A stretch of DNA of 64,000 nucleotides, taken from assembly GCA_964270895.1 (NCBI GenBank), contig OZ185437.1. One strand, given 5' to 3'. The DNA is from Podarcis filfolensis. Lineage: Eukaryota. The notes under the pieces are model-generated. The model made no database searches and was not told the origin of the DNA. It worked only from the letters and a program-made list of their open reading frames with translations. Positions 16,421 to 51,396 of this stretch are shown piece after piece. Position numbers and translations under genes: made by a program. Position 1 is the stretch's first letter. Every line of letters starts with the position of its first letter.

Positions 16421-16600
16421 NNNNNNNNNNNNNNNNNNNNNNNNNNNNNNNNNNNNNNNNNNNNNNNNNNNNNNNNNNNNNNNNNNNNNNNNNNNNNNNN
16501 NNNNNNNNNNNNNNNNNNNNNNNNNNNNNNNNNNNNNNNNNNNNNNNNNNNNNNNNNNNNNNNNNNNNNNNNNNNNNNNNNNNNNNNNNNNNNNNNNNNN
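16421..16600. other. Assembly gap (180 N)
   Basis: Run of N. Confidence 1.
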
Positions 16601-29804: not shown

Positions 29805-30004
29805 NNNNNNNNNNNNNNNNNNNNNNNNNNNNNNNNNNNNNNNNNNNNNNNNNNNNNNNNNNNNNNNNNNNNNNNNNNNNNNNNNNNNNNNNNNNNNNNN
29901 NNNNNNNNNNNNNNNNNNNNNNNNNNNNNNNNNNNNNNNNNNNNNNNNNNNNNNNNNNNNNNNNNNNNNNNNNNNNNNNNNNNNNNNNNNNNNNNNNNNN
30001 NNNN
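29805..30004. other. Assembly gap (200 N)
   Basis: Run of N. Confidence 1.
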
Positions 30005-32666: not shown

Positions 32667-33470
32667 ATGGATGGGATTTTAAATATCAACAACCTCAGAT
32701 ATGCAGATGACACAACCTTGATGGCAGAAAGTGAGGAGGAATTAAAGAACCTTTTATTGAGGGTAAAAGAGGAGAGCTCAAAATATGGTCTGAAGCTCAA
32801 CATCAAAAAAACGAAGATCATGGCCACTGGTCCCATCACCTCCTGGCAAATAGAAGGAGAAGAAATGGAGGCAGTGAGAGATTTTACTTTCTTGGGCTCC
32901 ATGATCACTGCAGATGGTGACAGCAGCCACGAAATTAAGAGACGCCTGCTTCTTGGGAGGAAAGCAATGTCCAACCTAGACAGCATCTTAAAAAGTAGAG
33001 ACATCACCTTGCCAACAAAGGTCCGTATAGTAAAAGCTATGGTTTTCCCAGTAGTGATGTATGGAAGTGAGAGCTGGACCATAAAGAAGGCTGATCGTCG
33101 AAGAATTGATGCTTTTGAATTATGGTGCTGGAGGAGACTCTTGAGAGTCCCATGGACTGCAAGAAGATCAAACCTATCCATTCTTAAGGAAATCAGCCCT
33201 GAGTGCTCACTGGAAGGACAGATTGTGAAGCTGAGGCTCCAATACTTTGGCCACCTCATGAGAAGAGAAGACTCCCTGGAAAAGACCCTGATGTTGGGAA
33301 AGATGGAGGGCACAAGAAGAAGGGGACGACAGAGGACGAGATGGTTGGATAGTGTCTTCGAAGCTACAAACATGAGTCTGACCAAACTGCGGGAGGCGGT
33401 GGAAGACAGGAGTGCCTGGCGTGCTCTGGTCCATGGGGTCACGAAGAGTCGGACACGACTAAACGACTAA
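32667..33470 (+). pseudogene. Stop-free C-terminal part of BovB reverse transcriptase ORF (267 aa, TE-derived; first codons come from flank)
   Basis: YADD catalytic motif; no frameshifts or internal stops. Confidence 0.9.
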
Positions 33471-38646: not shown

Positions 38647-40365
38647 TTATTATTTGTACCCCGCCCATCTGGCTGGGTTTCCCCAGCCACTCTGGGTAGC
38701 TTCCATAGAAACCAAAAAACACTAAAATATCACACATTAAAAACTTCCCTGAACAGGGCTGCCTTAAGATGTCTTCTGAATGTCAGGTAGTTGTTTATTG
38801 CTTTGACATCTGATGGGAGGGTGTTCCACAGGGCGGGCGCCACTACCGAGAAGGCCCTCTGCCTGGTTCCCTGTAGCTTTGCTTTTCGCAATGAGGGAAC
38901 CGCCAGAAGGCCCTCGGCGCTGGACCTCAGCGTCCGGGCAGAACGATGGGGGTGGAGACGCTCCTTCAGGTATACTGGGCCGAGGCCGCTTAGGGCTTTA
39001 AAGGTCAACACCAGCACTTTGAATTGTGCTCGGAAATGCACTGGGAGCCAATGTAGGTCTTTCAAGACCGGCGTTATATGGTCTCGGCGGCCGCTCCCAG
39101 TCACCAGTCTGGCTGCCGCATTCTGGATTAGTTGTAGTTTCCGAGTCACCTTCAAAGGTAGCCCCACGTAGAGTGCATTGCAGTAGTCCAAGCAGGAGAT
39201 AACTAGAGCATGCACCACTCTGGCGAGACAGTCCGCGGGCAGGTAGGGTCTCAGCCTGCGTACCAGGTGGAGTTGATAGACAGCTGCCCTGGGTACCTGC
39301 GCCTCCATGGACAGCTGTGAGTCCAAAATGACTCCCAGGCTGCGCACCTGGTCCTTCAGGGGCACAGTTACCCCATTCAGGACCAGGGAGTCCTCCACAC
39401 CAGCCCACCCCCTGTCCCCCTTCTGTCTTGTCAGGATTCAACTTCAATCCATTAGCTGCCATCCATCCTCCAACCGCCTCCAGACACTCACACAGGACCT
39501 TCACCACCTTCACTGGTTCTGATTTGAAAGAGAGGTAGAGCCGGGTATCATCTGCATATTGATGGACACCCAGTCCAAACCCCCTGATGATCTCTCCTGG
39601 CGGCTTCATATAGATGTTAAAAAGCATGGGGGAGAGGACGGAACCCTGAGGCACCCCACAAGTGAGGGCCCAGGGGTCTGAACACTCATCCCCCCCCCCA
39701 CTTTCTGAACACGGCCCAGGAGGAAGGAGCGAAACCACTGTATAACAGTGCCCCCAGCTCCCAGCCCCTCTAGACAGTCCAGAAGTATGTTATGGTCAAT
39801 TGTATCAAAGGCTGCTGAGAGATCCAGCAGAACTAGGAAACAACTCTCACCTTTGTCCCTAGCTCGCCGGAGATCATCAACCAGTGCGACCAAGGCAGTT
39901 TCAGTCCCATGGTGAGGCCTGAATCCAAATGGTCCGCATCTTCCAGGCGTGCCTGGAGTTGTTCAGCAACCACGCGCTCAGTCACGTTGCCCAAGAATGG
40001 AAGATTTGATACTGGGCGATAGTTGGCCATACTGGCCGGGTCTAAAGATGGTTTTTTTAACAAGCGGTTTAATGACCGCCTCTTTCAGCGGATCTGGGAA
40101 TGTTCCCTCACAGAGGAAGCATTCACCACCCCACAGAGCCCATCGCCCAGTCCTTCCCCCGGCTTGCTTTTATTAGCCAGGATGGGCAAGGATCAAGGAG
40201 ACAGGTGGCTGGTTTCACGCGTCCAAGTAGCCTATCCACATCCTCGGGGGTAACGGATTGAAATTGATTCCATGCAACTTGACCAGACAGGGCTCTAGCA
40301 CTCTCCCGTGCTAGCCCTGCTCCCACGGTGGTGTCTAGCTCCTTCCGAATATGAGTGATTTTATG
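38601..40365 (-). mobile_element. L2-clade LINE, 5'-truncated, frameshifted RT
   Basis: Consecutive frames KITHIRKELD / LLDPCPSWLIK / YRPVSNLPFLG / LLDLSAAFDTIDH / GVPQGSVLSP / QYADD / ALWNTLPSDV...REVFNV, with a (TAA)15 tail. Confidence 0.95.
38730..39398 (-). pseudogene. L2 ORF2 C-terminal fragment (222 aa)
   Basis: LDYCNALYVGLP...QNAAARLVTG...LHWLPV, typical of the L2 RT C-terminus. Confidence 0.9.
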
Positions 40366-48804: not shown

Positions 48805-50416
48805 CCTTAGATCTTCATTCTGTACAGCTTGCTTGTAGATTAATGTCAAACCTAAATTCCGAACATAAAAAATGGGCAAGTAATTGTGCTAATTAAATGT
48901 TCGTCCATGAAATTTAAGACTGTCAGGCTGTCCATTCTATATATAATGTATAGATACCAGTTTACATATGTAAACCAATATTTGTGCACACCAGAATTTT
49001 TAAGGATCAATGCCACCCTGAGGTGGGGAGGTGCCTGTATAAGGTGCAAATGGAGACTTGCTGTATTATTTAGAGCCCTGATTTTCCAGGATTTTGAAAC
49101 GCTTAGGGAGCCTACGCAGTTAGAATAGGCTCCCCACTTCAGACAGTCGCCCTCCACAAGTGGGAGGGTGATGGGACTGATGCTGTGGGTGGAGCTTGCA
49201 CCTTCATTCCTGCAGCCCCTCCCTATAGTGTTTACTTAACAATAGATAACACATCTGAAGAGGGCTATTGTGAACCTTCTTAGATAATAGCGGCAGTAAA
49301 TGTACACCGCTGTGCAATGCAGTATGATTACACACACTACTTATGTAATATAGTGGTTAATTTTTTTATATAATATCTGCACAATAATCTCCCCAAACAG
49401 AATTGCTACAAAATCCTAACGAGTTCAATGGGAGCATTAAGCAAATGAATAACCATCTCCAGTTGAAATCAATTACACTTAAAAGTGCTTAACTTTTAAG
49501 TTAATTATAATTATAATATGCTAAATATGTCTGACCTTAAAAAATATTTTGGTTTTCTCATTTGCTTTTTAGCAGACTTTTTGACAAAATCCTGTCTGGT
49601 CAAAACAATTTCCCTCAAGTAATTACATAACTGAACAGTCTCCTGACCTTAGGTTAGTTTCCATGGATCATTCACAAGCTAGGAATGGAATGATTGATGG
49701 ACTGATGGACCGTCTGTCAGACAGGAAAAAATCCATACCCAATGAAGCATTCTAAAATACGTATTATAGCCTGGATTATCCATATGAGGCAGACTTTATT
49801 TTTTTGGAGTAGCTAGCAAAGTGCTTTAGTAAGAGAGTGGATGCTTAATAGAAAGGGAGAAATACATTTTACATTTCATCTTGGATCTTTAAATTAGTTC
49901 CATTTTGCTTATGGAGTTTGCTAGCCATTCATAGTCTAGACATGTTTTTGTAACATGATAAAATATGAAAAAAATGATAAATACCCTTCACAGATTACTC
50001 ATTGTATTCCAATGTCTCCTGTCAATAGGCTGTTGCAGCACAAACTTAAACATAAGTGTATGTGCTTCTGTGAGCTTAAGATGTTGCACTGAAACCCACA
50101 AAAGAATAATACTGATATTTAATTATAGATACATACCCTTCTACCAATGTAAGTGGGACATAAAATATATTTACAGTACTAATAGACTGGATAGATAATA
50201 ACTCTTCCTGCCATAGTTAAGTATGTCACATAAAACTCTGCCCCTTTACAAGATAAATACAAATAAATTATTTCCCATGATGAAAATATATGCTCCAGAA
50301 TCTATGTCTTAAATGCATACTTATCTGTCAAGCTTTAGGTTACACTGACTCTCAGGTTATGAGATTTTTCCTGAGTCTCCATACTAGGGATGGAAAAGAG
50401 CCAGTATGGTGTAGTG

Positions 50417-50660
50417 AAAACAAACAAAAAAAAAATTTCCTTCCAGTAGCACCTTAAAGACCAACTAAGTTAGTTCTTGGTATGAGCTTTCGTGTGCATG
50501 TACACTTCTTCAGGGTGTATCTGAAGAAGTGTGCATGCACACGAAAGCTCATACCAAGAACTAACTTAGTTGGTCTTTAAGGTGCTACTGGAAGGGAAAA
50601 AAAAATTTTTTTTGTTTTGACTATGGCAGACCAACACGGCTACCTATCTGTAACTGGAAC
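50417..50660. mobile_element. Penelope-like element remnant with inverted (palindromic) arms
   Basis: 75-bp arms 50439-50513 and 50521-50595 (1 mismatch), 7-nt loop; 12-bp TSD TATGGTGTAGTG (50405-50416, 50661-50672); carries a hammerhead motif. Confidence 0.75.
50517..50554 (+). ncRNA. Minimal type I hammerhead ribozyme motif
   Basis: Stem I GTAT/ATAC; core CTGAAGA(A); stem II GTGTG-CATG-CACAC; GAA; palindromic stem III AGCT; cleavage after C50550. Confidence 0.75.
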
Positions 50661-50741
50661 TATGGTGTAGTGGTTAGAGTGTTGTACTAGGACCTGTGTG
50701 ACCAGGGTTTGAATCCGCACTCAGCCATGAAGTCCATAAGA

Positions 50742-51396
50742 TGTCCTGAACCCCTGGCCTACCATCAGTAAGTCAGTATGTCAAGTCCAAAGTCGGGGGG
50801 GGTCAAGCCACATAAGCAAAGGCCAAAGTCTAAAGGTCAGGAAACACATTCCAGGGTCAATTCAAATTCACAGTCCGACCCGAAGCATGGTCCAATAGCA
50901 GTCCAGGAGCATCCAAGCCAAGAGACATCAACATGGGCAGTTGAGTAGACACAGCACCTTACCTCTGCTTCCCCTTTTGTACTTTGCATGCTAATCTGGG
51001 CTTGATGAGGCAGCATCTGGGCTTGATGAAGCATGTGACCCTCACTGGTTCCAAGTCTACTCCTACCCTTCCTCCCAGAGGTAGCGAGCCCCACCTGGCC
51101 AGCTAGGGAGCTGGGCTGTTGGCCCTTGCCTGCCTCATTCTTCTAGAACACCACTCCCACTGCTCCCTACACCTCAGAGCCTGCCATGTTTGTGGAGACT
51201 GGGGCTCCTCTGGCACTGGTGGTGGGTCCTGCTGCTCTGGTTCTTGTGCATTGACCTCCATCCCCTTGCCATCCTCCCATCACCCTGTGAGTACTTCCTT
51301 CCCCATCCCCTGCTCACCTTAGTGTGTCTCAATCCCAGCTACATCCCCTCACCTGGATCCCCTTCCTCCTCCCCATGGTCCTGCCAGTTCATGACA
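50742..51396 (-). mobile_element. Solo LTR (Gypsy-type), 655 bp
   Basis: TG...CA termini with inverted TGTCCTGAA / TTCATGACA; flanking TAAGA / TAAGT duplication; removing it rejoins the SINE. Confidence 0.75.

Follow-up and report, generated by a model that had tools for sequence, protein, structure and literature searches.

A head-to-head Penelope-type insertion in a SINE of Podarcis filfolensis carries a minimal hammerhead motif that is probably silent

Results

The insertion and its host SINE

The window analysed here is a stretch of 64,000 nucleotides of Podarcis filfolensis DNA (contig OZ185437.1 of assembly GCA_964270895.1), and all positions are counted from its first letter. It contains a 244-bp insertion (50417-50660), a head-to-head pair of copies of a short element that lies inside a SINE (Table 1). 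In SINE copies elsewhere, GAGAGCCAGTG stands directly 5' of TGGTGTAGTGG, according to a read-derived consensus of the sequence before 50663, and therefore the host SINE is continuous once 50417-50660 is removed. This continuity, together with the 12-bp direct repeat at the two edges, identifies the 244 bp as a discrete insertion with a target-site duplication.

In an alignment of the two arms, the inverted arm extends only to the position equivalent to 50617, where the duplicated target follows, and on the left arm multi-copy depth begins at about 50419. Flank contigs of related species end about 10 nt past 50416, as is expected beside any repeat. The A-run/T-run at 50596-50606, between body and tail, varies in length and differs between the two arms; roughly half of the RNA reads are 8 letters shorter at 50596.

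The host SINE itself (50385-50416 and 50661-50741) is tRNA-like and multi-copy, with a summed depth 10^3-10^4 times that of the unique flank. No tRNA was called in the flanking SINE by ARAGORN, and a search with the rebuilt empty site found no second SINE copy within the window. Two runs of N in the window, 16421-16600 (180 letters) and 29805-30004 (200 letters), are assembly gaps or masked stretches.

Table 1. Features of the insertion, its edges and the hammerhead motif.
Feature	Position	Strand	Basis
Left copy of the target-site duplication, 12 bp TATGGTGTAGTG, in the 5' part of the tRNA-like SINE	50405-50416	.	direct repeat, 100% identical
Inverted element copy, 5'-truncated exactly at C3 of the core, lacking the 3' tail	50417-50513	-	arm alignment, inverted repeat
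Hammerhead core lacking helix I (minus-strand twin)	50484-50513	-	descriptor and sequence
GGT, joining letters of the two copies; 50515-50516 shared with the family long form	50514-50516	.	family 5' boundaries 50515 and 50517
Forward short-element body; start 50517 common to many family copies	50517-50617	+	contig ends
Helix I, GUAU/AUAC, 4 bp	ends of 50517-50554	+	sequence
C3-A9 of the hammerhead core (CUGANGA)	50521-50527	+	sequence
Unpaired A between positions 9 and 10.1	50528	+	sequence
Helix II, 5 bp, opened by G10.1-C11.1 (50529/50542), loop CAUG	50529-50542	+	sequence
G12-A14	50543-50545	+	sequence
A15.1-G15.2-C16.2-U16.1 (AGCU, palindromic, no loop 3)	50546-50549	+	sequence
C17, predicted cleavage on its 3' side	50550	+	sequence
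38-nt 3' tail, forward arm only	50618-50655	+	arm alignment; family 3' boundary 50655
GGAAC, five letters that separate the family 3' end from the target duplication	50656-50660	.	depth falls after about 50656
Right copy of the target-site duplication, 12 bp	50661-50672	.	direct repeat

An abundant family of short non-coding elements

DNA contigs from three related species were mapped to the interval 50300-50800, together with raw RNA reads from one of the three. Between 7,726 and 10,244 contigs per DNA run match the family at a level of at least 88% in the three species, and the summed depth over 50419-50656 is 10^4-10^5 times that of the single-copy flank, a value that indicates abundance only roughly and should not be read as a copy number. 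The ends of the family are sharp: 50-68 contigs per species carry unrelated sequence before 50517, and 37-40 contigs per species carry unrelated sequence behind 50655. With these two ends the unit measures about 139 nt, is non-coding and starts at helix I of the hammerhead. A second class of copies extends further 5', with a common sequence ahead of 50515, and this long form predominates among the RNA reads.

The majority of the family consists of non-palindromic copies. In other palindromic copies the forward start is fixed at 50516-50518 and the break of the inverted arm is variable (50457-50471). Within the window, blastn found no other element copies, since only the two arms match, as one inverted pair; a metagenome scan gave no match to the element body. 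Inside the motif (50517-50554), C50550>T is the only change among the variants listed at a frequency of at least 5% of copies, and it leaves position 17 an allowed H. According to the per-site tables, the sites listed as variable amount to about 1 of 38 in the motif and about 10 of 101 in the rest of the element. Low variation of the motif among copies could mean constraint; the contrast with the rest of the element is not significant, and therefore no constraint is claimed.

Penelope-like architecture of the insertion

An inverted, 5'-truncated copy directly upstream of a forward copy is typical of insertions of Penelope-like elements (PLEs), as is a tail of 30-40 bp at one end (Craig et al., PMC8557442). 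Both traits are present here: the inverted, truncated arm (50417-50513, minus strand) directly precedes the forward arm (50517-50655, plus strand), and the 38-nt tail is one-sided, being absent from the inverted arm. The 12-bp target-site duplication and the dispersed, multi-copy nature of the family are further traits of PLE insertions.

No RT/GIY-YIG gene was found beside the insertion in the window, and the 244-bp insert is non-coding. Membership among the PLEs thus rests on architecture rather than on homology, and because a telomerase-like RT with a GIY-YIG frame is missing we classify the insert as a non-autonomous derivative of a PLE and not as an autonomous one. Two RT relics, the only ones in the window, lie 11-18 kb from the insert and are LINE-like in appearance. 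The first (32667-33470, plus strand) matches Pfam RVT_1 with E = 4e-10; the second (38998-39738, minus strand) matches the same model with E = 1e-15 and resembles LINE-type RT clusters in a protein atlas. For neither relic was a PDB relative or a GIY-YIG domain seen.

The plus-strand hammerhead motif

The plus-strand letters at 50517-50554 read GTAT-CTGAAGA-A-GTGTG-CATG-CACAC-GAA-AGCT-C-ATAC, just as the sequence-only reading had given them, and every invariant base of the hammerhead core is present. That reading had placed the predicted cut after 50550, which is correct in standard hammerhead numbering, where C17 corresponds to 50550. Its assignment to the minimal type-I hammerheads of the kind found in Penelope elements is likewise supported, as the motif has every trait listed in PMC4209133, four of which count there as emergent in PLE hammerheads, are PLE-specific and are not demanded by the core descriptor that we used.

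This descriptor, our own for minimal hammerheads, consisted of CUGANGA, a bulge of 0-1 nt, a helix II of at least 4 bp, GAAA, complementary positions 15.2 and 16.2, U, and H. In the window it matched only 50517-50554 on the plus strand, with a helix I of 4 bp, and a core-only twin at 50484-50513 on the minus strand. When the window was randomised 400 times with a first-order Markov model, the chance rate was 0.0075 matches per 64 kb when helix I was not required, and a full match with a helix I of at least 4 bp occurred in none of the 400. We therefore regard the motif as real and not as a chance occurrence in the window.

The Rfam hammerhead models, which had been proposed as a check on the motif, gave a negative answer: there was no match in the window at the gathering score, nor in segments of 281 nt and 59 nt at E<=10. 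This is likely because the motif lacks a hairpin helix III. The exact motif string is absent from the searchable full-text literature.

The palindrome and the minus-strand twin

The Penelope-type palindrome that had been described around the motif is real. Its arms, 50436-50513 and 50521-50598, are 78 nt long and 97% complementary, and they are separated by a 7-nt spacer (50514-50520). A second, smaller palindrome lies within the motif, where helix II plus its loop, GTGTGCATGCACAC, forms a perfect 14-nt palindrome, again as first read.

Because the 5' truncation of the inverted arm lies exactly at C3 of the core, the minus-strand motif is left without helix I (0 bp) and lacks the short-helix-I trait. 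Its helix II is in addition cut to 4 bp by an A.C mismatch at the loop end, which stems from a private change, T50501 on the plus strand; in reads of other family copies this position is C.

The palindrome also attracts Rfam microRNA precursor models below threshold. Such matches were obtained for 50459-50575 on both strands alike, the best being MIR1222 with 61.8 bits against a gathering score of 90. We rejected the microRNA, FasX and leader matches on the palindrome as a generic hairpin effect far under threshold.

Predicted folding of the insert and of dimers

The fold predicted for the whole insert is a nearly perfect hairpin with an energy of -156.8 kcal/mol (z = -23), the stem of which is extended by the flanking A/T runs. 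In this hairpin the whole motif is paired with its own antisense, so that both cores are buried, and the structure should keep the motif from folding or cutting.

The motif of the right arm on its own has a monomer fold of -6.8 kcal/mol, which gives -13.6 for two monomers. The classical double hammerhead, with AGCU/AGCU as helix III and a swapped helix I, reaches -11.1 kcal/mol and is thus weaker than two monomers. The homodimer of minimum energy is a different one, in which helix II and helix I are swapped between the RNAs (-29 to -30.6 kcal/mol), and a tandem of two units adopts the same fold as this helix-II-swapped dimer.

These predictions bear on the earlier suggestion that both stems could strand-swap between two RNAs. 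The swap as such stands, since the best predicted dimer (-30.6 kcal/mol) exchanges both helix II and helix I; the same dimer, however, cannot form helix III, because a 14-bp helix holds its two AGCU strands apart, one at either end. A closed dimer that combines the helix II swap with helix III was accordingly rejected on topology. On the same topological grounds, the swap of helix II would more likely yield an inactive, competing structure than promote cleavage, except in assemblies of three or more RNAs.

RNA of the family in a related species

In run X23, from one related species, the RNA reads of the family are about equal in the two orientations. No position, 50550/50551 included, has an excess of molecule ends in this run, and the depth across 50550/50551 is continuous (346 and then 302 per bin); standard RNA-seq has little power to reveal 5'-OH or cyclic-phosphate ends, and cleavage may still occur at a low level. 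RNA depth on the unique flanks of the insertion is zero in X23. The depth profile also shows that genomic copies do not start at 50551, which implies that the motif was uncut in the templates of these copies.

The long form shares an upstream sequence ending in CTTCTGTTTCA before 50515, and was seen in 329 RNA reads with an agreement of 0.83. This points to one or a few longer copies as the main expressed source in the related species.

Reads of the left arm differ from the genomic letters in a strand-specific way at sites among 50455, 50466, 50468 and 50472. T>C changes were found in 34/72 and 32/60 reads of one orientation and in 0 of the other, and A>G changes in 12/54 and 12/52 reads of the opposite orientation. 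DNA contigs of that species show almost none of either change. A-to-I editing of the hairpin RNA could explain the differences, and so could a single expressed paralogue.

Discussion

Origin of the insertion and fate of the motif

The locus is very probably the product of one retrotransposition of an abundant, non-coding, short Penelope-type element into a SINE, which left a masked and silent hammerhead copy. We hypothesize that this single event would account for both of the head-to-head copies in the SINE. The inverted copy would have been begun from the inner 3' site and would break off where the hammerhead core begins, and the forward copy would span the sequence from helix I of the hammerhead to the outer 3' site, which would explain its 38-nt tail. 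The likeliest cause may be reverse transcription primed on both cut DNA strands, as has been seen in vitro for Anolis Poseidon. The Poseidon enzyme cleaves and extends both DNA strands in vitro, and its reverse transcription starts at two nearby internal sites whose spacing equals the tail (PMC11167929). Applied to the present locus, two cDNAs, one per start site, would have been primed from the two cut strands and then joined head to head.

The hammerhead motif would have been inherited from the family, whose source RNAs may cut weakly as a dimer or with the help of an element protein. A transcript that runs across both arms would form a perfect hairpin of about 80 bp in which the motif is paired with its antisense, and this pairing would leave the copy at 50517-50554 catalytically silent; we infer that it is probably a neutral relic. 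A transcript that starts inside the insert and covers only the right arm would, on the other hand, escape the hairpin.

Alternative readings

Could the long hairpin, rather than the ribozyme motif, be the relevant feature of the locus? It might provide double-stranded RNA for small-RNA silencing of the family or for ADAR editing, a role that would be compatible with the retrotransposition described above. The near-perfect 78-bp stem, lengthened by the flanking A/T runs, would suit such a role, the sub-threshold microRNA matches reflect the shape of a hairpin, and the strand-specific T>C and A>G changes of the left-arm RNA reads, nearly absent from the DNA contigs, are what editing could leave. 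On the other side, the microRNA scores are far under gathering (61.8 against 90 for the best) and equal on the two strands, RNA depth is zero on the unique flanks in the run examined, and the RNA differences can stem from one expressed paralogue. Taken together, we consider a role of this kind unlikely.

A more elaborate proposal is that the helix II palindrome has been selected. Chains of more than two RNAs would then be held together through helix II, helix I and AGCU and would carry composite active sites, and in parallel palindromic insertions would act as antisense hairpins that feed small-RNA or ADAR control. We put this forward as a decidedly long shot.

That the plus-strand motif is active here, cleaving transcripts of the host or the element 3' of C50550 either in a dimer formed with a second copy or with an element protein as chaperone, is very improbable. 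In favour of activity, the core has its full set of invariant bases, helix I has 4 bp, the family is transcribed in a related species, and the related hammerhead of the Anolis element PAc cleaves when protein is added (PMC11167929). Set against this, the motif is paired to its antisense in the hairpin of -156.8 kcal/mol, and the double hammerhead ranks below two monomers in predicted stability. Loop-loop contacts give natural hammerheads their activity at cellular magnesium (summarised in PMC4209133); since helix I is open and has only 4 bp, these tertiary contacts are absent here. Published minimal hammerheads cut poorly in vitro, even as dimers (PMC4209133), and X23 shows neither a pile-up of RNA ends nor a step in depth at 50550/50551, with no RNA on the unique flanks. 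The PAc hammerhead cuts only with the element protein, its cleavage is dispensable for insertion, and RNA-seq ends at its cut site are not seen either (PMC11167929).

Finally, an origin unrelated to PLEs, from a hairpin-forming DNA transposon or foldback element with a hammerhead-like string that arose by chance, would fit the lack of an adjacent RT/GIY-YIG gene, of an Rfam hammerhead match and of the motif string in any searchable paper, but it is hardly credible, as most copies are non-palindromic with fixed ends (50517 and 50655) and variable inverted arms, which is the pattern of a retroelement and not of terminal inverted repeats, as the asymmetric tail and the inverted truncated copy are PLE signatures, and as the motif has the four PLE-specific traits that go beyond the core descriptor.

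Comparison with known hammerhead systems

With a retrotransposed, non-autonomous Penelope-type element as the preferred reading, the closest relatives of the motif are the minimal hammerheads of metazoan PLEs, which were described by Cervera and de la Pena 2014 (PMC4209133) and, as cited in PMC6765202, also by Lunse, Weinberg and Breaker 2017. The common traits are the type-I topology, the full core, the unpaired base between positions 9 and 10.1, the G10.1-C11.1 pair, the absence of loop 3, the palindromic 15.2/16.2 positions, which allow a helix III only across a pair of RNAs, a helix I of 4 bp and a huge, dispersed copy number. Close twin motifs on opposite strands have also been reported for metazoan PLE hammerheads, as are found here at 50484-50513 and 50517-50554. 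The present motif differs in its helix II, which has 5 bp in comparison to the 6-8 bp stressed in PMC4209133, and in its CAUG loop, which turns the whole stem-loop into a 14-nt palindrome.

The Poseidon element PAc of Anolis carolinensis (PMC11167929) shares CUGANGA, the bulged base, helix II, GAAA, a palindromic helix III of 4 nt, C17 and a short helix I, and it resembles the present family in having two 3' ends that differ by the tail and in the lack of RNA-seq ends at the cut site. It belongs, however, to another sequence family, with CUGAGGA, a longer helix II and CG at 15.2/16.2. Moreover, PAc is autonomous and its reading frame starts inside the ribozyme, whereas the element here has about 139 nt and is non-coding.

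In being short, non-coding, hammerhead-bearing repeats, the elements also resemble the non-LTR retrozymes of animals, for which an origin from the terminal repeats of PLEs and mobilisation by PLE enzymes have been proposed (PMC7229834; preprint 10.64898/2026.07.22.740005). Retrozymes form head-to-tail tandem arrays that give circular RNAs, while the locus described here is a single head-to-head pair; head-to-tail tandem units with a hammerhead were not found, the element matching only itself in the window. In comparison to the canonical type-I form of Rfam (Hammerhead_1), the catalytic core and the order of the strands are the same, and the motif lacks the hairpin helix III and the contacts between loop 1 and loop 2.

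Significance

The motif belongs to a known class and is probably an ordinary, inactive copy of a very abundant family. As a discovery it carries little weight, since minimal, dimeric PLE hammerheads have been described since 2014 and inverted, tailed insertions are textbook knowledge. Its value is that of a clean worked example of the published PLE insertion signature, in which the target duplication, the inverted truncated copy and the tail on one arm are seen side by side. The locus also illustrates that inverted duplication can disable a ribozyme motif, and it advises caution: motifs of this kind should not be counted as active ribozymes or as host regulators.
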